64,000 bases of DNA, taken from Oikopleura dioica (Eukaryota > Animalia > Chordata). The translations under genes were made by a program, and so were the position numbers. Location of the stretch: contig OU015566.1 in NCBI GenBank assembly GCA_907165135.1, forward strand, positions 2,356,001 to 2,420,000. The letters run 5' to 3'. The first letter of the stretch is position 1, and each line of letters opens with the position of its first letter. A model generated the notes under the pieces. The model saw only the letters and a list, made by a program, of their open reading frames with translations. It searched no databases and was not told the DNA's origin. This document shows, piece after piece, positions 1 through 15,955 of this stretch.

Positions 1-107
1 TTTTGAACTTCATTTTCTTATTTTCTTTTTATTTTTCTAAGATTCACGATTTCGCCGTATTTTTGGGGACCCCCTCTAGTATAACAAAATCTTCAAACTC
101 CGACAAG

Positions 108-575
108 TTCAGACATCTGGATGCTCGGCGTCACCATTTGGCAGATCATGAATTCAGGTAAGCGGCAAAGCCGACCCGCATAAAATCGGGGTCAACTTAT
201 CTCCCCGATACCTAGGCGCCACGCCATATGGACACTTGTCCGGCCCGTCGCTCAAAGAAGAACTCTTCAGTTTACTCAAAGTTGACAGGCTCTCCATGAC
301 TCGATCCATTCCAGAGGTACTCATTCCATTGCCAAAAAACGCCCATAACCAAATTGTCTATTTAGCCACTTTACGGAGTCCTGAGTAACACATGGAAGCG
401 CGACGCGGAATTACGACCGGATATCGCGCAGATTAAAATTGACACCGACGACATCTTCTCGAAAGGTGCCCTTTTGATGATGACTAATTTCAAGCGTGTG
501 ACTTTTCTCTTTCTAGGTCCTTTGAAACCCGTCACCAAAAGAAAATTGACTCCCATCGTTACTGAGAAGTTTTGA
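108..575 (+). CDS. Protein tyrosine kinase, 3' exons only (gene starts before the window)
   Basis: Spliced reading SDIWMLGVTIWQIMNSG|ATPYGHLSG...IPE|PLYGVLSNTWKRDAELRPDIAQI...K|GPLKPVTKRKLTPIVTEKF*; kinase subdomains IX-XI; three short GT-AG introns. Confidence 0.8.
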
Positions 576-1603
576 CTGCTTTGACTGCTCAAGAAATATT
601 TTCATGAGATTTCATGAAAAATCGCAAAATCGATGTTGACACCCTTAAAACCCATTTTTTGATCAGAAATTAAATAAAAAAGCGTAGTAATTCTAATTTA
701 AAATTTGTAAAGGCATTACTACGGCGCATGAAAATGAGCATTTTCTAGAGTAGTAGAAGCGTCTGGCTAATCCAACGCGGCGGATCGTCTAAGCGCCAAA
801 TTTCTCTCCAGTTCTAAAAACATTCTTTTTGCCCGGTTTGGTATGCAAGCTGGCGATAAGACATTACCGCATGTTTCGTGTTTCAACAAACGATCTATAA
901 AAAATGTCCAAACCGCTGCCTGAAATAACTTTTCCAAATATATTTTTTTTCGCCAAAAATAACGGATTAAATAATCGGATTAGTTTTGAAGTTATTAAAG
1001 CCGATGAGATACTAATTGAGCAAGAAAATGATTGAAGTTTACGATTAAAACCCACTGAACGACCAATTTCCCGTGGTTAATTGCTCAAGTTTAAAATGAT
1101 CACTTCCTTTTTTCATGACAACTCATTCTTAAAAAATGACAATTTTTTGTCTTTTTTTTTGGATCAATTTTTCTCCAAAAGGAAAAAAATTCGTCGATTT
1201 TAAAAATTCAAAAACGGTGAAAAATATGTAAAACAAAATGTTTATGACCACTCTTCCCGCGTTTGAAATTGTGTCGGTTAGAGAACGGTACTTGGCAGAT
1301 TCGCATGTTGGCGTTCCAGGCTGTTGACCCACGTGACTTGGCGGGTTACAAAGATTTATGGCGAATGCACAAATACCGATCTATCGAATTTTTTGTCATT
1401 TATGTCGGACCACTTGTCGCGTTTCCGCTCTCGCTGCCCCGTAATGGGAAAGCGAGTTTTGGAATCGCCTCAAAAATGCACAGAAAAATGAATAAGGATG
1501 AATTTTTCTTGATCGAAAAATACAGAAAAAAGAATAAATTTAGTTCCTTTGAAGCTTTCAATTAAAAAATAAACCTCAGGAAGAAGTCAAAAAGGGTCTT
1601 GGA

Positions 1604-1932
1604 AGCAAATCAAAGAACCTGCCCTTATTTCTCAAATCTTGAGCCAAGGAAGAAGCGCTGGGAACGGCGATATTGACTGTAAACTGCGTGATACAATCTG
1701 GCGGAAGGGTTTAACTCGCCTGGGAAGGTGTAATCTGTTTTTTTTGTCAATAAATGCAAATGATTTGAAAAAGACCAGGTTTAAAAATATTATTGAAAAA
1801 AAAATGCATTTCTCCGGAAGAATGAATTTCTAGAGCCGTGGAAACAGGTGTTGCCGTGGCAGGGAAAAGCGGATTAGGACGGAAATAGGGTTGAGGGTGA
1901 TTTTTGATAAGCGGAAAATCGCAAAGTCGCAA
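1604..1932 (-). CDS. Possible exons of an unidentified small gene
   Basis: Open frames PQPYFRPNPLFPATATPVSTAL and YTFPGELNPSARLYHAVYSQYRRSQRFFLGSRFEK* separated by an AT-rich intron-like gap; donor and start unresolved. Confidence 0.25.
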
Positions 1933-2367
1933 AAATAAAAATCGTTGAGCGCGCGCGGGGGAAGCCGTTACCGTCGCCGGATCAGGAGTCGATACGATTG
2001 ATGAGTTTTCGAGAGGCGAAACAGGAAACCCAAGAATTATAATTTTCGCGTTTCTGCGGTTATTATTATAATTAACGAGCTCTCCTGTTTCCGTATTGAT
2101 TTATAGTCAAAATCCATGCATGCTTTTTTGGCAATAAAATCAAAGATAAGTTTTTTTTTGACTCAGAAGATACACCCTTTAGCCCCCCTTTAGCCCAAAA
2201 TCCGTGATACTCCCCCTTGAGAAGTGCAATCGCTTGACTATACTTGTGTTGCCCTCGACTTACTATTTGGATACGCAACGAGCAAAGAAATTTTCGAAAA
2301 TTTTAAGGGGATCACCCCGAAATCACTGTTTAAAAATGTTATTCCCACTCGACGTTCGGGTCCTTAA

Positions 2368-2753
2368 GGGGGTAGAAACAGCTTTTTTCCGAAAAAGGCG
2401 ATTTTTGACCGGCGCTACAGACAAGATAATCTTACATTTTCAAATTTTCTCTTCAGGTTTAGATAGATACATCTTAGATCTAGGAACCTCTCTCTCGAAA
2501 TTTGTTTTAGCCATCAAATTTTTGAGTAAGCGGGTTCAGAAGCAACTCATCTCTCCGAAATTCTCGATTTTCGCAAATTTTTAAACACGTATATCTCGAG
2601 TCCCCTGATAGTTAAACAAGTTTCATTCACATTTTTGTGAAGCTCAACCCTTTTTCTAGGAACATTTGCGAGGAAATTCCGTGAACATAAATAAATCGTA
2701 TGCTTTCTTTTATGTAGCTGCAGTCCAAAATCGAGAAAGCTGTTTCTACCCCC
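2368..2753. mobile_element. Kolobok-type MITE family A, copy 1
   Basis: TTAA at 2364-2367 and 2754-2757; TIR GGGGGTAGAAACAGCTTT; interior similar to 50251-50728 and 62282-63917. Confidence 0.85.
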
Positions 2754-3723
2754 TTAAACACAGTTACCGAGCCCAGAAGACAGAAAAAATCTTGGGCGCT
2801 GATAAGAATCTCATATCCCCCTTCCGTAAAATCCGGCCCTGACCGCGTTAAGGATCTCACCTCTTTTCTTATCAACCTCAAGATTATTTGAAATTTTCCC
2901 ATGAAGACTTAGAAAAAGAAAGAATCTTAAAATCTTCAATCGGCCCATTTCCGAGCTCGATTCTAATCCTGGCGCCTTCTTGACCAGAACTTGCCGGAAA
3001 TTCGAACAAAAGAAGCTATTTTTTTATCTTATTTTCTACTGTAAAATTGAGCTTATGCCGGGTGAGAAGTTTTTGGAAGGAAAAAGGACTGGGAGACTTT
3101 GAAGTACTTGAGGAAGTTGATTTTGGATTAAACTGTCGCATTTTTCGATAATCACCTGGCAACAAACCAAGCGCTTCAAATTCGATTTAAAATTGGTACT
3201 TCTTAGTTAGGGTTAGCCCAGGTTAATTCGAAGCTGCGATGCAATTGTCATTTGACATGAACTTTTCTTCATTCATTTTACGAATCACAAATCGGGCATT
3301 TTTTTGAGATTTCTGACAGTTTTCTAAAGATTTTGACGAAAAAAACTTGATCCTAACGCAAAATCTTGCTCCTGAACGTAGATTTTTTTCAGAATTATTC
3401 AAGAAATCAAACGGATAAGTGGTTACTGCTATTTTAGGAGCAAAATTTGATTCAGCGTTAAAAATTATCTTCATCTGTAGATTAACAATGAGATACCCTT
3501 AAATCATTTTCCCGAAAACCGTCCTTTATTATGGAAGAATTATAAACCAACTCATTTTTTCAAAAAATTCCAGCGCCGTCAGTCGCAAACGCGTTTTCAA
3601 CGGCAGAGCCCGCAATTTTTTGCGCGCCAAGCCGTTGAGAATCAAAAGCTGTTTGAGCTGGGCTTGATCCGGTGGTGGCGCTGAGCTAGTCACGTACTAG
3701 CGCTCTTCCCCTCTTTTCGCCGC

Positions 3724-3730
3724 TATAAAA
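3724..3730 (+). promoter_or_regulatory. TATA box in a GC-rich promoter
   Basis: TATAAAA flanked by TTCGCCGC and GCGCCGCGAA; E2F-like TTGGCGCGCAAA on the minus strand at about 3630-3641. Confidence 0.55.
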
Positions 3731-3754
3731 GCGCCGCGAAAAAGGTGAATTTCG

Positions 3755-4930
3755 TCGTCAACAAAAAATGTTTTCAAAAACGTAAAAAAAAATAAATTTT
3801 TCCACCAAAAAAAAAATAATTTTTCTCGAAAAATTTTCAAATTCTTTCGAGTTTTTTCAAAAATCCAAAAAAAAATCAATTTTTTTCAACCCGAGACGGC
3901 CGTGCCACTGCCGAAATGTTCACTGCCCTGAAAATAGAAAAAAATGCCGAGACAGAAAATCCCGAGCTCCAAAAACGCCAAAAAACGACGAAAAAAAAAC
4001 CAAAAAACAACCAAAAAAATGCAACAACTCCAACAAAAAAAAATTGCTGCCGATTCCTTCGACTGACGATTCGGACGATTTAGATTCGGTGCACTGCCAA
4101 AACCAACTTTTTTTTTTGCTTTTTTGAGGCGAATGATGGATTAAGGTGACCAAGAGAGATATTTTCGAAAGAGAGTTTTTTTCGAAGTGAACCCCCTTAA
4201 GTCAAAAACAAGAAACAAAAGGAAAGCGCTTTTTATGGCTAGATCCTTAAGTTTTCTAACTTTTGTAAATTGATCCCCTTAAGACTTAAGGGTACCCTCT
4301 CACTTTTATTCAAAAACTCATTCATCAAAATTCTCTCCATCCCCTTAATCCCTCTTTCGCCTGAAAAAAGCAAAATCCGAGAAATCGTCTTTTTCGAAAA
4401 TTCACGTGTATCCCCTTAATTTATAGCGGGCTAAGGGGATATTCTTACCTGAATTTTCAAAAGACCTATTTTCTCGCCTAGACCAATTTTAGAGCCTGAC
4501 AAAAACATGTTCACACTGCCACTTTTATGATTTAAAATTTTTTTTAACTCGCTACCGATCACTGCCAAATTTTCGGTCTTTTTTATGCCAAGAAATTGTT
4601 TCTCGAAACGATTCGCGAATTTTTTCGAGAAAACTTTTTCTTACCTACTTCGCCAAACATTCCAAACTTTTTCTTTTCGCCCTTTTTCGTGTTAATTTGC
4701 CCACTGCCAAAATTTAAAAAGAATTTCGCCTTTTTGTAATTTTGAAATTTCCAAAAACCAATTGTATTGTGACTGTATTACTTCTTGACTGTATGAAATT
4801 AAAATAGTTTTTTTTGATGAAATAAATTCTTTAATTTTAAATCTACTCGACTTTGTTCATTACGCAGGATAATTTTGTTTATCAAAAGCAAAAAAAAAAT
4901 GAAAAATTTAATAAAGCAGCATTTTACGAA
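3755..4930 (+). ncRNA. Candidate lncRNA or micro-ORF transcript with clustered seed-match sites
   Basis: Upstream TATA; only a 55-aa low-complexity ORF from ATG 3916; 6 CACTGCC and 4 CCCCTTAA on the plus strand; TGTA motifs and AATAAA near 4820 and 4910. Confidence 0.4.
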
Positions 4931-6433
4931 AAAAAACAGCGCAAAACTCAATCTTTTCCTATATTTCCTAAAACATATTTTTCATGAGAAAATAGCTCTT
5001 TTATGAGCCGTTTAAACGACTCATAAACCCAGTTTTTTAAACACGCGCGTAAAATTAGTTTTCACTCGCGCATAATTTTTAAAACTCGCCGGAGACAGGA
5101 GTAATAGAATTGAAAAAAACTGATTCAAATAGATTTGGAAAATGAATGTTGAAACTGAAAAATTTGGACGTGACTTTTTTTCGCGCGCCTTTTTTTTTCT
5201 GGGGCAAGCAGGAGGGTCAGCCAAGTTCGAGAATGAACGGAGTGGCTTTCCGGCATTTCGGAGAAGATTATGGTTTGATCGAATATTTTCATTGCGTTAT
5301 TCTTACGGGGGGATTTATTAATTTTATAAGAAAAAATTAAATTCGAGAAATAATTTTATTTATCATAAGAAATTTATGATTTTTACCATATTTTTATAGT
5401 AAGAAAAAATTGGTTTGGTCAAAAAAATTAAGGGTATCATGTCATTTCTGACACCTTTATTTGGAAATTTCGAGCAATAAGTTGTTCGAAAAAAATAATT
5501 GTCGGAATTCATGACACAATATCTTTCTTTCCAGAAAAAGCACTTGACTCCGTGATTAAAAGATTAGATTGCCAATTCAGACGATTCTCAATAACGTTCT
5601 CGAACTGAACTTTTGACCCTGTTTGAGTTCATCTAACGAATAGAATGTTCGAAAAGGTTCGCTTGATTATTGATTTTTTGAAGAGTCTATTTTTTCCAAG
5701 AAGGTCGTTTCCGGTTCGAAAATGAGTTTTCATTTTGAATCTTCAATTTCCGCTCGCTAGAACGCTTTTCTAAAGAGGCCAGAAGTTGATCTCTTGAAAA
5801 TCTGTTTTGATAAGCTGCTGCTTATCTCACTCATCGTGATTGGCGGCTTTTTCGAGATGGAAAGAGCTTCCGACTTTTTAGCGGTTTTTGCGCTTTTCGG
5901 CGACTTGCGAAATTGCAAATCGACGATTCCGAGATTTTTTCTTTTTCAAGTGCGAAAATTCAAAAGATTGACCTTGAAAAGATGGTCCAAGCCCGCGAAA
6001 TTCCGCAAAATGAGTCGCCTCTGAATAGTTCTGTTCAAATATTTCAGCACTGTGAGACCCGGAAGAACATCTTGCGATAAAACAACCAAAATTTCGCGCA
6101 AAAATGTCAAAAAATGACGAAAAAAATTAAAATTTAACCAACTCGCGTATCTTTTTTTAGGTCTTACAAAAGACTGATTTAATTCACTTAACATTTCTTA
6201 GAATCTTCTTTTGCAACATTGACGCCAAATCTTTATTTATTGAAACAAGACAGCTTTTAACTGATGTTGCTTCAAGCATTAATTAATTCCAAAGCAAGGG
6301 TATTTAATGACATCCTCCTGTCTCAAATCTCGACATAAAAATCCGCTGAGAGGAATCAGCTGCGATTTACCCCTTCCAACTCGAAATAAAAAAGAGGGAC
6401 ACGAGCGATTTTATCTTCGAAAAAAAAATTGAG

Positions 6434-6683
6434 ATGAGAGTTTTTCTGATAATAGCGAGCTTGGTTTCTCTCCTTGAAGGTACTGTAAAAACTGTGAAGA
6501 TTGAAAATTTTGAAATTTTAAGGCGCCGTTTTCTCGAAAAATGACGATGGAAGTATGAATTTTAAATCAGAAGGGACCGAAGACGTTTACAAACGAGAGT
6601 CGATGAGGATTCCTCAACAAGATCTGATGCGATTCTTCATCGATTATTTCGACGGAAATTCACCATCCTATGCATTTATCTGA
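6434..6683 (+). CDS. 68-aa secreted peptide precursor
   Basis: MRVFLIIASLVSLLEG|AVFSKNDDGSMNFKSEGTEDVYKRESMRIPQQDLMRFFIDYFDGNSPSYAFI*; 43-nt GT-AG intron 6480-6522; signal peptide and KR site. Confidence 0.7.
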
Positions 6684-7357
6684 GCTGCTCTGACAAAGCT
6701 TCGAATAAAATTTTGCCAAGTGATAGCAAGGAAGAAATTATTTCTTATGATTTTTCTTTATTCTTTAGCATTATTTTTAATCAAAGAGAATCCGAATTCA
6801 TCCAGGCTGAAACCATACTGTATAAATTTTCTGTAGATTCCTTCAAATTCTGCATTGGATAGTTATCATCTTTTATAAGGTCGGAAAATGCGTTTTTGCA
6901 AGCGATTCTTTCAAAGTAAATTTCATAGCCCGGTCGAAAGTCTTTCTTTACTTCAAACTATCAAAAAAAGAGAATTTTTTTTTCTGATGAGAGGAGTGAA
7001 GTTTTTCCCTGGCTTCGGCTTTTCCAGCGGGGGCTGCTGTAAGAAACTTGGGATCATTATTTTTTGGTTTTTCTATCTTCTATCTTTGCCATTTGTTTTT
7101 GTTAACTTGATTTTCTGGTAATCATATGAACTCTTTTATTAAACAAGAATTAGGCCTATCGCATTTTGTTTTCGGAAATGCTGCTGTCGAAGTTGTTGCT
7201 GCAGGCATTTCAAATATCGAGATGAGCTTATCATGGCCATCTGCGGATTCTTGGTCTATGGAGCCTTCCTGTATCCATTTTCAGTTCTTACTTTTTGCAT
7301 CGGAATAGCTGGATGTTGTGCCTCATTGTTCATTTTTATCAAACTTGCGATTTTAGG

Positions 7358-7880
7358 ATGCCAAGGTTTGCTAACTGACTGATTTTTTACATTTCTTCAA
7401 TGATTTTTATTTCTTGCTTTCAGAAAAGAAACGACGGAAACGAAGATATCGTCAACAAGAACAAAATCGCCATAATTGGTTGAGACTCCAAAGGAACCGC
7501 GAAGAACAAGAAAGAAGAGAACGGGAACGAGAACAAGAAAGGCGAAATCAAGCATATTATAGTGAAGAAAGTGATGACTCATCAGGGAGTGTTTTATTTC
7601 GAAAAAATGCAATCATTCTTCGGTACGGGGGCTCTTCGCCCTATTTTTCGTTAAAAGTTCCGCGTAAAACAAACTCAAAGTTGACTATGGCAGAGCTATT
7701 GCCGGTCTCGCTGCGGGTGCTGTTCTTTATCAAGCGGCAAGAGAAGCTGCTGAAGAGCGGGCAAGAAGAGAGTACGTTCCAACCATCAGTCAGCAATTGA
7801 CATTTGCGAGACTTCAAGAAACTGATGATGGTTTACGATTACAAGGTTTTCGAATCAATCGTGAATTTAGCTTGACATAA
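7358..7880 (+). CDS. Small basic, charged protein of unknown function
   Basis: MPR|KKRRKRRYRQQEQ...SDDSSG|DYGRAIAGLAAGAVLYQAAREAAEERARREYVPTISQQLTFARLQ...FSLT*; TTTTAG acceptor directly before the ATG. Confidence 0.55.
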
Positions 7881-9472
7881 TTTTTCTGCATTTATATCCC
7901 ATCAATAGAATAAAATAAATCCAATTTCAACGACCAAGTCTCCGAATTCTATTAAAAATTATATTTTGAATTATCTTTGAATAAAAAAGCGAAGAAATTC
8001 GTTCCTGAAAAGAAACAGTAATTAGGCGCGCACTTGTGATCATCTCGAAGTAGCCACTACTATTTACCGCAATCGCCTGTTCCCGATCGATCAGTTTGTT
8101 CTCCTTTATTTTCTCCTTATTCCTTTCATTAAAAAAAAACTTCGCCTCATCAAAACACCGTCAGAGACAAATTCACTAATGGATCCGTGCGCAGAAGACG
8201 AAATAACAAAAGCATTCCACCAGGTTTTAAGAGATTCTCTTCCTTGATTTTTTAAATGATTTCTTTGAAAAAGTTTATTCCCTTGGCAATTACGCTTACT
8301 TTAATCCTCTGTCCGCTGATTCTTTGGCAACTGTTGATCCTTTTATCCCCTCCAAGATCTTCTGACCAATTTGGTAGACCGATTATTCCGGTCAAGAAAG
8401 ATAAGATATTCTCTGCACTTTATGAGAACCCGGCTGGGGTCAGAAACGGAACGTTAGTTTTTTGAGTCAAAAACATTCCTTGAAGCTATTTCAGAAATCA
8501 CTCAACATCGGAAAAATACATCCCGAAAAATTCTTATCGAAGTCCGAAATACGACCGCAGCAAAATCGACGCCATCTACGGCACGCGAATTTAAAATGGC
8601 AATATATAGTATGTTCTTTATTCATTTCTAAATATACAGTAGCAAAGAGTACAATATACAGAAAATCGTTTGTCATGCTTTTCGTTTTTTGAATTGTCAT
8701 CTCTTCCAATTTTCTCGTGAAAGAGACCCGTCAAAAATGTTGTCTGAGCGGGAAAAATGATGTCCCCCGCTGAGTTTTGCTGATAAGGCTTCCGAGCTAG
8801 AGCCAGTCGATAAGTAGGTAAGGGCAACCGTCTTTGGCCAAGAAAAACTTAGTGCCTTACCAAAATTAAGGGGGAAAGAGGGAAGAAAAAATAAGGGTGT
8901 CAATGTGAATTGGAAAAATTCAGGTTAGGCCCTAATCAAAAAGCTCAAAAAGTTTTTGCCCTTTTGAATCGCCAAAAAAGCTTTCAAAATGTTTGGGTTC
9001 GTACTGAGTTTGAGTTGAACTTTTTTATTATGTTTTTTTATCATTTTTAGAGCTCATGATTATGTCATTTTCAAACGAATTATAAATATGATTGTCTCGT
9101 TGCTCGTCAAAATTGTTTCAAATGATGAATTTCGTGGCAACTTATTTACAAAAGATAAACTTTGTTACATATGTAAAACACTTGTTAAAATCCAAAGTGG
9201 ATCGACTTAAAAAATATTGTGATTAGGTACTTTTGATAAGGGTGTCTAGAAGCTACTCGACGGTGCCTTCTTACCAAGTTGAGCTTGTTGAGTTTCCATA
9301 TTCTGAAATAAGAAGATTAAGGGTGTCAATAGGAAAAATATTTTTTTGTTGGGTTAGGGTTAGGAATCGGGCCAAAAAAGAGAAATAGGCAAAATAATCT
9401 CCTCTGATTGGATAAAATTTTTTGGCTCGAAAACTAACCCTAACCCTTTCACGACTTTTTGAGCCAAAAAAT

Positions 9473-9631
9473 GGGGATGGTGTCTGGAACCGACAAAAAA
9501 ATTCGACAAATTTTGCGGGGGCGGCTACTCGGCTGCTGATTGGCCGGTTTGCCGGATACAGGCTTCTGATTGGTTGAAAATTTCCACGCAAAATTTGTCG
9601 AAATTTTTTTGTCGGTTCCAGACACCTCCCC
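9473..9631. mobile_element. CCAAT-bearing MITE, copy 1
   Basis: TIR GGGGA(T/G)GTGTCTGGAACCGACAAAAAA...TTCGACAAATTTTGCG; two internal ATTGG. Confidence 0.85.
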
Positions 9632-9643
9632 AAAAATGCCTTT

Positions 9644-11340
9644 TTAAAATTGTTTAGTAAAAAGTAAATATTTGTTCAACATGACAAGCTCGTAATAAGC
9701 TGCCCTCAGTGTCCTGTAATCCCTTTTTTTCATACCTGCTTGACAGAAGCCATTGGGTTTAATTTCATCCTGGCAGCACTCGAGATACGAAGTGTCATAC
9801 GTTTTGTCCAGGCAGCAGGATCGCTGCCCATTCCGCGAGTTGTAAGGCTGTCTGAAACAACGTTTTCATTAACCTTTTCAAAATTGTACGCTTATAATTT
9901 GTGCGCTTGAAAATTGCGAATTTTTCAATTTTCTAAGTGAGCGAAAAACTTGAAAACTTATAAGCAGCACGAAAGCGCTTTTTTTTCTAATGAATTCAAA
10001 ACGTGTTGTAAAACGAGCTTTTTTAATAAAAAAGAGCTGTCTGAAATTTTGTGTCAAAAAAGTCTGCTCTAGAATTTAATGATCGACCTAGTTTTTTCGA
10101 ATAATAATTTGATTTTCACAGTTAAAATCACGAGTGAGTAAAATTTAAAATCAACAATCTGATTGGTCGACAAATTTTTTTAAGCATTTTGATTGGTTTA
10201 CGATTAAAATTTGATAAAAATTCCTATTCTTGTTACCTGTAAGGGTATTCGCCACAGCATTGATCTGCTGGTGGTCCTCCTATGGCTGGACAATTGCCTT
10301 TCGAGTCGAAACCGCTGTTCTCAATATGCAAGGAAGAATCATATTGAGTAAACGTAGCTCGAAGTCCTTCGATCAGCATCTTATCACACTAAAATCGACA
10401 AGATATTGTCATGAAGCGACTAAGGGTATCACCTCGCAAAGGGCAGATCCACAGAGATCGTTTTCCGCGTCGCAGACAAGAGTTCTATCGCCGTTGATCA
10501 AGTCCTTCTGTCCAAAGATGCCGTAGCCGTGGGATGCATCGCAGGAAGCACCGTAGTCCATTTGGGCGCACTGGACGCATTGAGCGTGCATTTTGCAGAC
10601 ACTAAAGGAAAAATCAATTTAAGATTTTCACATAAAATTTTCGACGAAGAAACTTCCACTTACGAGTCAACCTCATCCATTGGCATTCCTCTCATCGCCA
10701 GATCATAGTTTTCGCCATGCGCCAAGCACCAGCATCCGTATCCCCACCAATCCAGAACATGTGGCTTTTCAATGCCTTCTTCGAGGTCGTTGAAGATGAA
10801 GCCCACCATTCTCTATCACGAAAATCAGCGGCAATCGAAAAAGACAGGAGGTACCTTGAGATGAATGTATCGCTCCCCGGCGTCGGTGGAAATTGACTCG
10901 AGTAGCCTAAAATCCTCGTCGCCTAAATCGCTTATGGTCCGGATGTTGGTGATTCCTGCCTCTTCAGCGAGATCGTCATTTATCTAAAAGTGCGATCGTC
11001 AGATAAGAGATTCCAGAGAGCGTTTTTTCTCACCTTGAATCGATAAATTTGAGCCTCTTGAATAGCATGAAGTTCGCGTCGTCGACGATGTCGGATTGCT
11101 GATCGACGAGATCTTAAAAAAATCAGGAAATATCAGTTTTCAATTTTGAAAAAAAAAAACCATAAAAAATTTTCAAAGGGTGAAATATGGTATTAACAGA
11201 TTGGTTTAAAATTTTGAGTTATCCTTGAAAATATAGACAGAAAATAACAAATTGATGACGCTTGATAGCTTTTTTTCCTACCTTTTATGATGTCTGCTTG
11301 CAAATATTTCGCTGGTGAGGAGGATCGTGGCGATTTTCAT
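9644..11340 (-). CDS. Secreted phospholipase A2-like protein with Cys-rich tail
   Basis: Signal MKIATILLTSEIFA; GYGCWC...PMDEVDS|VCKMHAQCVQC; CDAENDLCGSALCE|CD; CCGEYPYR|QPYN...CC...CC; 3' end uncertain. Confidence 0.75.
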
Positions 11341-11941
11341 TGCGGATTCTGAAAAACAATAGAATTTGGCCAGTCAAAAAATTTATAAAATGATCTTTTT
11401 CGAAATATTGATTTTTTTTTGAATTTTTTTGATAAAAGTTTTGTAAAAAATAAATTTCATCTCTTTTTTTCTGTACCAATGAGATTTTTTCTCACCTTGA
11501 TCGAATCTCTTGTCGTTTATTCTTGAAACCGTTCTTTACGAAATCTGAAAAACTCTCGAATGACGAGCTCGAGTACGTCAACATCCCCATATTCTTTCTC
11601 ATGATCGCTCAGGTGGCGCGCGCGAGCGAATCGCGCAAGCCAGTACTTTTGTGCTTATCCACGACAGCGTTGCGCCTGGCCGCGCACGTATTGTGATTAT
11701 TTTGCATCAAGCGATGCTCCCCAAATTATTCAATTAATCCGGGATCCGTGTTAAACAAATTCAACGTTCCGCGAAAACACGAAATGACCTTGCGCGATGA
11801 AAATAGACAATTCGTAAAGCTATTTTAGATGAAAGCAAATGAAACGTTTCTGATTCAAAAACATGCACTTTCTGAATAACTATCGATTGAAATAAGGGTA
11901 TCCCTACTCTTAATTTCAAAAATAAAGATAAAATTAATTTC

Positions 11942-12093
11942 TCGGCGTCAGAAACCGAAAAATATTCGACAAATTTTGCGTTGGAGGCTACTCGGCTGGT
12001 GATTGGCCAGTTAACCAAATTCAGGCTTCTGATTGGCCGAAAATGTCCGCGTTAAATTTTTCGAAATTTTTTCTCGGTCCCTGACACCTACCC
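11942..12093. mobile_element. CCAAT-bearing MITE, copy 2 (degenerate left TIR)
   Basis: Same interior TTCGACAAATTTTGCG...GGCTACTCGGCTG.TGATTGGCC...GGCTTCTGATTGG and right end GACACCTACCC. Confidence 0.75.
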
Positions 12094-13964: not shown

Positions 13965-14525
13965 TGGATGAGTCATAATTATGAAAAATTTGATGATTCA
14001 TAATTATGAAAGACTTGATGAGTCATTATAATGAAAAATTCAATGACTCATTATTATTACAGTTTTTTATGGAATTTCTGGACATCAAATTTCTGGACAT
14101 TTTTCGGATTTTAAGGGGTTTTCTTGGGACAAATTCAAAGAGAGGGGGTATCAAATTTCTGGACATTTTTTCTCAACAGATGTCTTCGACATCTAAATTT
14201 TTAGTCAAACTTGAGTTATTTATGCCAATTTCATCTATAAAGAGCTATTATTCTTCGAAAATCTTATAATATAACAAGAAAGACGGCTACAGCGCGTTTC
14301 TTTTATTGTTCTTTAGTAATTTTTTTGAAAAAAATCGTCAATTTTTCCGTCTCGAAAAATTTTTTAGCAATTTTGTTGGGACATTTTTCTGAAGGCTCTG
14401 TATCGAATTTCTGGACATTTTCGGGAAAAATGGGGGACAAAAAATGTCCAGAAATTCCATTATTAACTGTATTAGTTTAATGAGTCATAGTTATGGAAAA
14501 TTTAATGAGTCATAATTATGAAAAT
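13965..14525. repeat. 25-bp minisatellite containing TGA(G/C)TCA, split by a MITE
   Basis: Units at 13969, 13994, 14019, 14044 and 14481, 14506. Confidence 0.75.
14060..14469. mobile_element. Tc1/mariner-type MITE
   Basis: TA TSD; TIR CAGTT...ATGGAATTTCTGGACAT; related copy at 53851-54186. Confidence 0.8.
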
Positions 14526-15049: not shown

Positions 15050-15955
15050 CCTTCTGTCATCGTCCGCAATATCTTCTTCCGAGTAAAAACCGCAAGGGCT
15101 ATCCGTATCCAAACAAGAAATTCCGTTTGCGTAAGTTTTAAAAACACAAAATTAGGTCATACTCTTCCTAAAGTCCAAGGCGTCCTTCCAGTCCCCGTCA
15201 CCGGATCCCAGCGGGTCGCGAATCGGAAATAATTGAAAACGCGCCCTTTATCAGCCGAATCGCAGCTTTTGGAGAAGTTCTTTTATGAAACGAAAAATAA
15301 CGTTATTGGACGATTTCAATTAATTATCAACGTAAAAACGAAGGGAAATAGTATGTATCTAATGTGGAAAACAATGCCTCAAGAATTTTATCTTCATTTT
15401 TTAGAACTTTTTCTTTGGCCGGGAAGAAACTCGTCCGGCAAATGGCGTAAGTAGCAAAGCGTCTAGAAATAAATATAGAATAAATGTGAGGTAAAACAAG
15501 TTTGTTGTAAGTACCATAATTGCTCATTATCGATAACATAAAATCGGAAATATTGGCAAAACAGGTTGCCTAGCCCCGTATTGGGCCTTCAAGTTTCTTT
15601 CGGGATCCGAAAATTAGGGTGTCACTTTGCTAATTTAAGTTTTTACCTGGCAAAAACAGGCCCCATCTTCTTTCGCATAAAGCGCGTAGTTAAACGGTCC
15701 TGCAGGTCTGAAGTCATCCTCTAGAAAGAAGAGAAAAGGCTCGTTTGACCATTATGATGAAAAAGTTATCATTAAAAAACCTGGATCATAAACACTCGCG
15801 CAGAATTCTAAACAATCTGCCTGGGAACGCTCTAAGCTCGTCTGCATTAAAAAGTCATCGTAGCAAAAGTAGGACACATTTTCTCTCATCAAAGTGTAGC
15901 CAGAGCCATTTTCCGCGAAAGATAAATGCAAAAATAGCAGATTCAGAAATTTCAT
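15050..15955 (-). CDS. Secreted Cys-containing protein, PAN/apple-like motif; 3' exons uncertain
   Basis: MKFLNLLFLHLSFA signal; SQADCLEFCASVYDPG; EDDFRPAGPFNYALYAKEDGACFCQ exon. Confidence 0.4.

Follow-up and report, generated by a model that had tools for sequence, protein, structure and literature searches.

A conserved candidate non-coding RNA locus with seed sites for miR-1490 in Oikopleura dioica

What is a tight cluster of six identical heptamers, all on one strand, doing in a gene-poor stretch beside a receptor-kinase-like gene of the tunicate Oikopleura dioica? The heptamer, CACTGCC, occurs on the plus strand at positions 3906, 3921, 4092, 4514, 4560 and 4702 of the window, by which is meant the whole 64-kb stretch of DNA that was analysed, and its last four copies (4092, 4514, 4560, 4702) extend to the 8-mer CACTGCCA. 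CACTGCC(A) is the seed match of the miR-34/449 family of microRNAs (miRNAs), whose seed is GGCAGUG, and a preliminary description of the locus had read the cluster as a set of miRNA sites in a TATA-driven, near non-coding transcript. On recounting, all six copies and the four extensions were present as described. The accompanying statement that the window holds one other copy, at about 60860, stands for the plus strand (60861); two more copies were found on the minus strand (26207 and 38360).

Dinucleotide shuffles give an expectation of 2.16 copies for the window with both strands counted, and about 0.02 copies are expected within 3750-4930 under Markov models and 20,000 dinucleotide shuffles, the maximum in any shuffle being 2. 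The genome-wide count of 4782 copies in 64.3 Mb corresponds to about 0.03 per 800 nt on one strand, against which six are observed at 3906-4708, a clear multi-site excess over chance. The copies are unlike a decayed repeat, since no one-mismatch variants were found in the cluster stretch and the flanks of the copies have at most about 11 nt in common. By itself, the cluster is nevertheless unremarkable, because three other places in the same window hold at least six copies of some 7-mer within 850 nt. What distinguishes it is the conservation of its sites and the existence of a matching miRNA.

The matching miRNA is not the canonical one. The Rfam mir-34 model found nothing in the whole genome, the mature miR-34 pattern with up to three mismatches gave fewer matches than the control, and the best-looking miR-34 match, at C1:8988883, has no hairpin fold (z = 0). 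When hairpins that set GGCAGTG opposite CACTGCC were sought, a strong one emerged at C1:16098580 (-46 kcal/mol, z = -6) that matches the Rfam family RF04237, mir-1490. This is presumably the O. dioica family of the 2008 miRNA survey by Fu and colleagues; in the literature that was searched, which did not cover Fu et al. 2008, neither a list of O. dioica miRNAs nor a mention of miR-1490 was found. The family model places six hairpins in the genome:

G000:C1:8280367-8280447, plus strand: mir-1490 hairpin by the family model
G000:C4:5537203-5537282, minus strand: mir-1490 hairpin by the family model
G000:C5:2647293-2647372, plus strand: mir-1490 hairpin by the family model, also matching the Rfam mir-449 model
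G000:C5:2265755-2265839, plus strand: mir-1490 hairpin by the family model
G000:C1:16098580-16098662, minus strand: mir-1490 hairpin by the family model, nearly palindromic
G000:C5:10742283-10742369, plus strand: mir-1490 hairpin by the family model

The 5' arm AGGCAGUGAGUUGAUAGCGCCC is identical in four of the six, and the 3' arms differ. It begins with AGGCAGUG in five hairpins and with CGGCAGUG in the sixth (compare AGGCAGUGAG), and because the A or C preceding GGCAGUG is where the paralogues start to be conserved, this seed would occupy positions 2-8 of the miRNA, the mature 5' end being placed on this basis. The nearly palindromic hairpin would give a 5' arm starting with GGCAGUG from either strand. 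These six hairpins amount to a multi-copy genomic miRNA family with exactly the seed GGCAGUG that is not filed as miR-34, so that the expectation of a miRNA with this seed in the species holds in the form of mir-1490, and not in that of miR-34 itself. On the mir-449 model, which belongs to the mir-34 clan CL00087, the hairpin at C5:2647293 scores 38.1 bits (E = 1e-5), short of the cut-off of 60.4; the best precursor score on the mir-34 model is 13.9 bits, with a cut-off of 53.4. The mir-449 match suggests that mir-1490 is a divergent O. dioica member of the miR-34/449 group.

For the conservation of the sites, two lineages of O. dioica were compared, Okinawa (OKI2018_I69, chr1:2356001-2420000) and Norway (GCA_000209535.1). 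The genome of this species is very compact and fast-evolving, and its miRNA repertoire is reduced and altered. The Norwegian locus (L017, on FN653026.1) was reached through a 645-aa exon open reading frame (ORF) of the neighbouring RET-like gene, which led to the Norwegian protein P0003, and was retrieved with 10 kb on either side; exon ORFs served as queries one at a time, and P0003 is only 48% identical to the Okinawa query. The alignment covers window 3559-4672 and L017 15189-16249. Over 3752-4830, the presumed unit, the alignment is interrupted by many indels and is 57.7% identical, and 12.5% of the 7-mer windows are perfectly conserved. The Norwegian plus strand carries CACTGCC at 15510, 15525, 15706, 16083 and 16123, in nearly the same order and spacing as in Okinawa, so that five of the six sites are exact and collinear (binomial P = 1.6e-4, from two lineages). 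Conservation of the motif in another O. dioica lineage, proposed earlier as a check on the miRNA reading, is therefore seen in Norway, and it extends to the TATA and AATAAA blocks described below. A third lineage and evidence of transcription were also sought through exact look-ups of local ORFs and metagenome scans with the conserved islands, and these came back blank. The predicted sites are as follows:

3893..3927, plus strand: conserved island of sites 1 and 2, GAGACGGCCGTGCCACTGCCGA..GTTCACTGCC
3906-3912 and 3921-3927, plus strand: sites 1 and 2, CACTGCC, exact at L017 15510 and 15525 with the same spacing
4092-4099, plus strand: site 3, CACTGCCA, in island GCACTGCCAAA (4091..4101), exact at L017 15706
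4514-4521 (4504..4521), plus strand: site 4, CACTGCCA, exact at L017 16083
4549..4567, plus strand: site 5, extended, TCGCTACCGATCACTGCCA, with predicted pairing of the seed (nt 2-8) and of nt 10-19 of miR-1490 in both lineages
4657..4664, plus strand: miR-1 seed match ACATTCCA (8-mer) in the conserved island ACATTCCAAA, L017 16231
4702..4709, plus strand: site 6, CACTGCCA, Okinawa-specific and not conserved in the Norway alignment

Coding constraint does not account for site 3, which would fall in different reading frames in Okinawa and Norway. Sites 4 and 5 have immediate neighbours that vary between Okinawa and Norway around an unchanged 8-mer; at site 4, these neighbours are A or C before it and C or G after it, from which it follows that the conserved unit is exactly the 8-mer. 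Site 5 is the most extensive. Read by hand, base by base, its duplex with miR-1490 has nt 9 bulged, nt 14 mismatched and nt 20-22 unpaired, and the predicted energies with the 5' arm, -23.5 kcal/mol for Okinawa and -25.5 kcal/mol for Norway, compare with a mean of about -18 for controls with shuffled flanks, of which 71 of 2000 (Okinawa) and 7 of 2000 (Norway) were as good. The site has a single substitution, T to C at 4559, by which a G-U pair becomes G-C. From start to start, sites 1 and 2 are separated by 15 nt, and sites 4 and 5 by 46 nt in Okinawa and by 40 nt in Norway; spacings of 15 nt and of 40-46 nt permit miRNA sites to act cooperatively. The accessibility of the sites, predicted by partition-function folding, is only average to good and does not discriminate. 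As for the possible second miRNA, the genome encodes a canonical miR-1 hairpin (G000:C1:5324630-5324712), and the extra 3' pairing of miR-1 at ACATTCCA is not significant.

The sites lie within what looks like a transcription unit. TATAAAA at 3724 with AATAAA downstream had been pointed out before the two lineages were compared, and both were located, at 3724-3730 and 4821-4826. The features that would delimit the unit are these:

3559..3732, plus strand: conserved promoter region with islands identical in Okinawa and Norway
Within 3559..3732, plus strand: promoter islands TTCAAAAAATTCCAGCGCC, GAGCCCGCA, TTTTTTGCGCGC (E2F-like by eye), TGATCCGGTGGTGGCGC and AGTCACGTA
3724-3730, plus strand: TATA box TATAAAA, conserved exactly, as is CGCTATAAAAGC
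3751..3762, plus strand: block TTCGTCGTCAAC, 12 of 12 bases identical, likely the transcription start region (predicted start site)
4810..4832, plus strand: block TTTTTTGATGAAATAAATTCTTT with AATAAA at 4821-4826, 23 of 23 bases identical

Counted from the first base of the TATA box, the block TTCGTCGTCAAC begins 27 nt downstream. TTTTTTGATGAAATAAATTCTTT probably holds the polyadenylation signal, where a unit of about 1.1 kb would end. Because the TATA, start-site and AATAAA blocks are all conserved, a unit of this length is bracketed in both lineages. The Okinawa sequence holds an ORF of 55 aa (3916-4083), which terminates ahead of an acidic block, and the Norwegian sequence holds one of 81 aa; what they have in common is confined to a lysine-rich run and KNATTP..CC, their frames and stops differ, and their start codons are not homologous. 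No protein-coding frame is conserved in the two-lineage comparison, which agrees with the preliminary description of a near non-coding transcript with only a low-complexity micro-ORF. The unit is thus likely to be non-coding, with a small, fast-evolving ORF kept as a rival.

Folding of the two-lineage alignment adds a further conserved element, a set of three nested long-range helices, together with a separate small hairpin:

4128..4361, plus strand: three nested long-range helices in the RNAalifold consensus of the two-lineage alignment
4128-4146 with 4343-4361, plus strand: outer helix, RNAalifold consensus
4187-4190 with 4300-4303, plus strand: middle helix, RNAalifold consensus
4194-4203 with 4283-4292, plus strand: inner helix, RNAalifold consensus
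4412..4437, plus strand: small hairpin, CCCCTTA, loop ATTTATAGCGGGC, TAAGGGG, a 25-nt island identical in both lineages

All 28 pairs of the nested domain, of which a 44-nt inverted repeat forms part, can form in both lineages with no broken pair, and the outer helix shows five compensatory changes and two one-sided changes that leave a standard pair; when the partners were slid by 1-3 columns as a control, pairing fell to 36-52% with 0-1 compensatory change, a comparison whose power is limited by its resting on two sequences. Several helix pairs are G-U in one lineage, and since such pairs would be A-C mismatches on the minus strand, a plus-strand RNA is favoured over a DNA element. The loop ATTTATAGCGGGC of the small hairpin is perfectly conserved. 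Given that the surrounding sequence has diverged in a compact and fast-evolving genome, the exact conservation of five seed sites and of the helix is a strong sign of function, and contamination or recent introgression as a source of the Norwegian match is argued against by the 58% identity of the sequence around them.

Long ORFs are missing from the stretch of roughly 16 kb that contains the cluster. This stretch follows a RET-like kinase gene of the plus strand (protein Oidioi.mRNA.OKI2018_I69.chr1.g574), whose final exons end at window position 575, and the next clear gene, judged aldose-epimerase-like from its translated ORFs, occupies about 16.3-17.6 kb of the minus strand. A homologue search with the nearest upstream minus-strand ORF was empty, and a search of window 1-12000 for known RNA families gave nothing relevant. 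The locus is linked to the RET-like gene in both lineages, beside which a run of collinear conserved non-coding blocks extends over window 2949-6054 and L017 14080-17196. Further non-coding blocks conserved with Norway at 77-88% were observed at 787-913, 1311-1391, 1871-1992, 2949-2999, 3097-3138, 5789-5831 and 5998-6054, of which 787-913 and 1871-1992 are inverted in Norway. They have no preferred reading frame and, on folding, no stable hairpins, and may be regulatory elements near the RET-like gene. The RET-like gene itself differs between the lineages. The Okinawa gene is interrupted at L016 6113-9106, a short way upstream of the window, by an intron of about 3 kb with a minus-strand ORF series that begins with a signal-peptide-like exon, and in Norway the exon sequences flanking that intron are contiguous (L017 12093/12094); the intron and its nested gene could either have been gained in one lineage or lost in the other.

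In genome searches, the region 3700-4950 matches only itself, as does 4110-4480, and the locus is accordingly single-copy. That the region might prove to be a dispersed transposable element had been named as a finding that would overturn the miRNA reading, and this is not what was observed: only self-matches were returned, where such an element would show multiple copies, terminal inverted repeats and a target-site duplication, and sensitive blastn against the CACTGCCA-bearing repeats found elsewhere, a hAT-type miniature element (MITE) and a multi-copy C3 element, returned low-complexity noise and no sequence relation. An origin from a transposon or MITE was rejected on these grounds. MITE copies do occur elsewhere in the 16-kb stretch, at 2362-2758, from a family with dozens of copies at 90-95% identity, and at 14057-14472, from a family with about ten copies at 90-100% identity among the matches listed.

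The two CACTGCC-rich repeats are of some interest in their own right. The hAT-type MITE is about 450 bp long (L014, about 1215-1660, in G000:C1:2898500-2901500), with copies in L013, L015 and contigs C1-C5. Terminal repeats CAGAGTTCGAAAT and an 8-bp duplication TTTCAAAC mark its ends, and in its subterminal parts ACTGCCA/TGGCAGT (TGGCAG/CTGCCA) is densely arrayed, with two to four exact copies of CACTGCCA. Most close CACTGCC pairs in the genome belong to this family, which could therefore scatter miR-1490 seed sites into transcripts. The other repeat is a multi-copy segment on the 2.9-Mb contig C3 (L010, L011 and L012, near 1.50 Mb, 1.66 Mb and 0.955 Mb), in which three 27-nt tandem units TTTTCACTGCCAATTG are followed, after about 125 nt, by a fourth, CACTGCCAAT. 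L011 also has a 216-aa ORF with a hydrophobic, membrane-span-like end, about 650 nt upstream of the first site, and the units may be miR-1490 sites in a 3' UTR.

The explanation favoured here, with a probability of roughly 0.55, is that the interval 3.75-4.85 kb is a conserved, structured, plus-strand non-coding RNA (ncRNA) gene whose product binds Argonaute-miR-1490 as a decoy, a decay trigger or a regulated target; what we infer from the sequence is that the gene is transcribed, that Argonaute binds its RNA and which of the two regulates the other. The RNA, of about 1.1 kb, would carry five positionally conserved miR-1490 sites and one Okinawa-specific site, and Argonaute loaded with miR-1490 would occupy them partly in close pairs, of which there are two (spaced by 15 nt and 46 nt), and partly singly, with site 5 (4549-4567) contributing extensive 3' pairing. 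Either the RNA would titrate or destabilise miR-1490, as a decoy or through target-directed decay, or the RNA itself would be switched off wherever miR-1490 is expressed. The extended site 5 lends some weight to a role as a decay trigger or high-affinity decoy, and its predicted pairing ends at nt 19, three bases short of the 3' end of an assumed 22-nt miRNA, which is atypical of known triggers. The locus is a good candidate for an RNA in a regulatory relationship with miR-1490, be it as regulator or as target.

The main rival is a cis-regulatory module acting at the level of DNA, such as an enhancer or extended promoter, for example for the RET-like gene, in which CACTGCC(A) would be the core site of a transcription factor. 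It is an unlikely explanation, if one to be taken seriously, for the locus does lie within the collinear conserved non-coding run and is linked to the RET-like gene in both lineages, other islands resemble factor sites (CACGTA and, E2F-like by eye, TTTTGCGCGC), and conservation by itself cannot separate a motif that works in RNA from one that works in DNA. Several observations nonetheless pull towards RNA: the six copies share one orientation, the conserved unit is exactly the 7-8 nt complementary to the seed of a genome-encoded miRNA, the covarying helix relies on G-U pairs possible only in RNA from the plus strand, conserved TATA and AATAAA blocks lie on either side of the unit, and no factor could be assigned to the CACTGCC motif. 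None of these arguments is decisive. A structured ncRNA whose CACUGCC repeats bind an RNA-binding protein, or make RNA-RNA contacts unrelated to miRNAs, would suit the defined RNA architecture suggested by the conserved helices and hairpin loop, yet it would leave both the match in miR-1490 seed register and the extended pairing of site 5 as coincidences; with about 40 miRNA families assumed, a rough guess, the chance of a 7-mer matching a seed is about 40/16384, and this reading is regarded as very unlikely.

Quite unlikely, too, is a short-ORF mRNA, encoding 55 aa in Okinawa and 81 aa in Norway, lysine-rich and then acidic, whose long 3' UTR would be heavily repressed by miR-1490. An ORF does lie over the A-rich segment in both lineages, with KNATTP..CC common to both and a conserved DDSDD-coding block, and against it stand the unconserved start codons, the stop of the Okinawa ORF ahead of the acidic block, the different frames in which the lineages would read the islands GACAGAAAA, GACGATTCGGACGATT and GCACTGCCAAA, and a shared similarity that consists mainly of low-complexity lysine codons; neither product occurs in the protein collection, which may omit this or very near genomes. 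That the cluster is a functionless product of chance, or the remains of a decayed repeat or transposon, is highly improbable. Clusters of 7-mers are common in the window and arrays of CACTGCCA also occur in the hAT-type MITE family and the multi-copy C3 element, but a single-copy locus without homology to those repeats or degenerate copies of the motif, with five sites exact across lineages whose intergenic DNA is otherwise mostly unalignable, is hard to reconcile with such an origin.

A more specific form of the miR-1490 reading may be offered as speculation, and a doubtful one as a whole. The locus could be a dedicated regulator, in a chordate whose miRNA set is drastically reduced, of the miRNA family with the miR-34 seed, a structured ncRNA that would capture miR-1490 on its five conserved sites and trigger its decay through site 5, with its linkage to the neighbouring gene kept through the extreme genome scrambling of O. 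dioica; the extended site might descend from the 3' arm of a miR-1490 hairpin, and the miR-1 site might tie the RNA to muscle.

Conserved ncRNAs with proven roles in regulating miRNAs are few, and are known mostly from vertebrates, flies and viruses. Among the decoys or sponges are linc-MD1 for miR-133/135, CDR1as for miR-7 and the plant IPS1 for miR399. The predicted transcript would resemble them in being non-coding, in offering one miRNA family a set of conserved seed sites, some of them near enough for cooperation, and in carrying a conserved site for a possible second miRNA, miR-1. It differs from them in having only five or six sites, in showing no sequence relationship to them, in being a prediction from sequence, and in belonging to a tunicate, with a partner miRNA that bears the miR-34 seed and is specific to the lineage. 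If confirmed, it would be, as far as could be found, the first miRNA-binding ncRNA described in a tunicate.

Triggers of target-directed miRNA degradation include Cyrano for miR-7, NREP/libra for miR-29 and the herpesvirus HSUR1 for miR-27, and known triggers usually engage the 3' end of the miRNA. Site 5 resembles them in its predicted combination of seed pairing, a one-base discontinuity at position 9 and long 3' pairing (10-19), conserved throughout, and differs from them in leaving the last three bases of the assumed 22-nt miRNA unpaired and in the mismatch at position 14. With its 1.1 kb and five sites, the locus would, if confirmed, provide a small and tractable system in which a decoy, a decay trigger and a regulated target could be told apart.

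Compared with the miR-34/449 family, miR-1490 has an identical seed, GGCAGUG, and identical site types, CACUGCC and CACUGCCA, and one of its hairpins scores on the Rfam mir-449 model, whereas the 3' two-thirds of the miRNA are unlike miR-34. The resemblance may reflect either homology or convergence on a common seed. A confirmed locus would thereby also bear on whether miR-1490 is the tunicate heir of miR-34/449.
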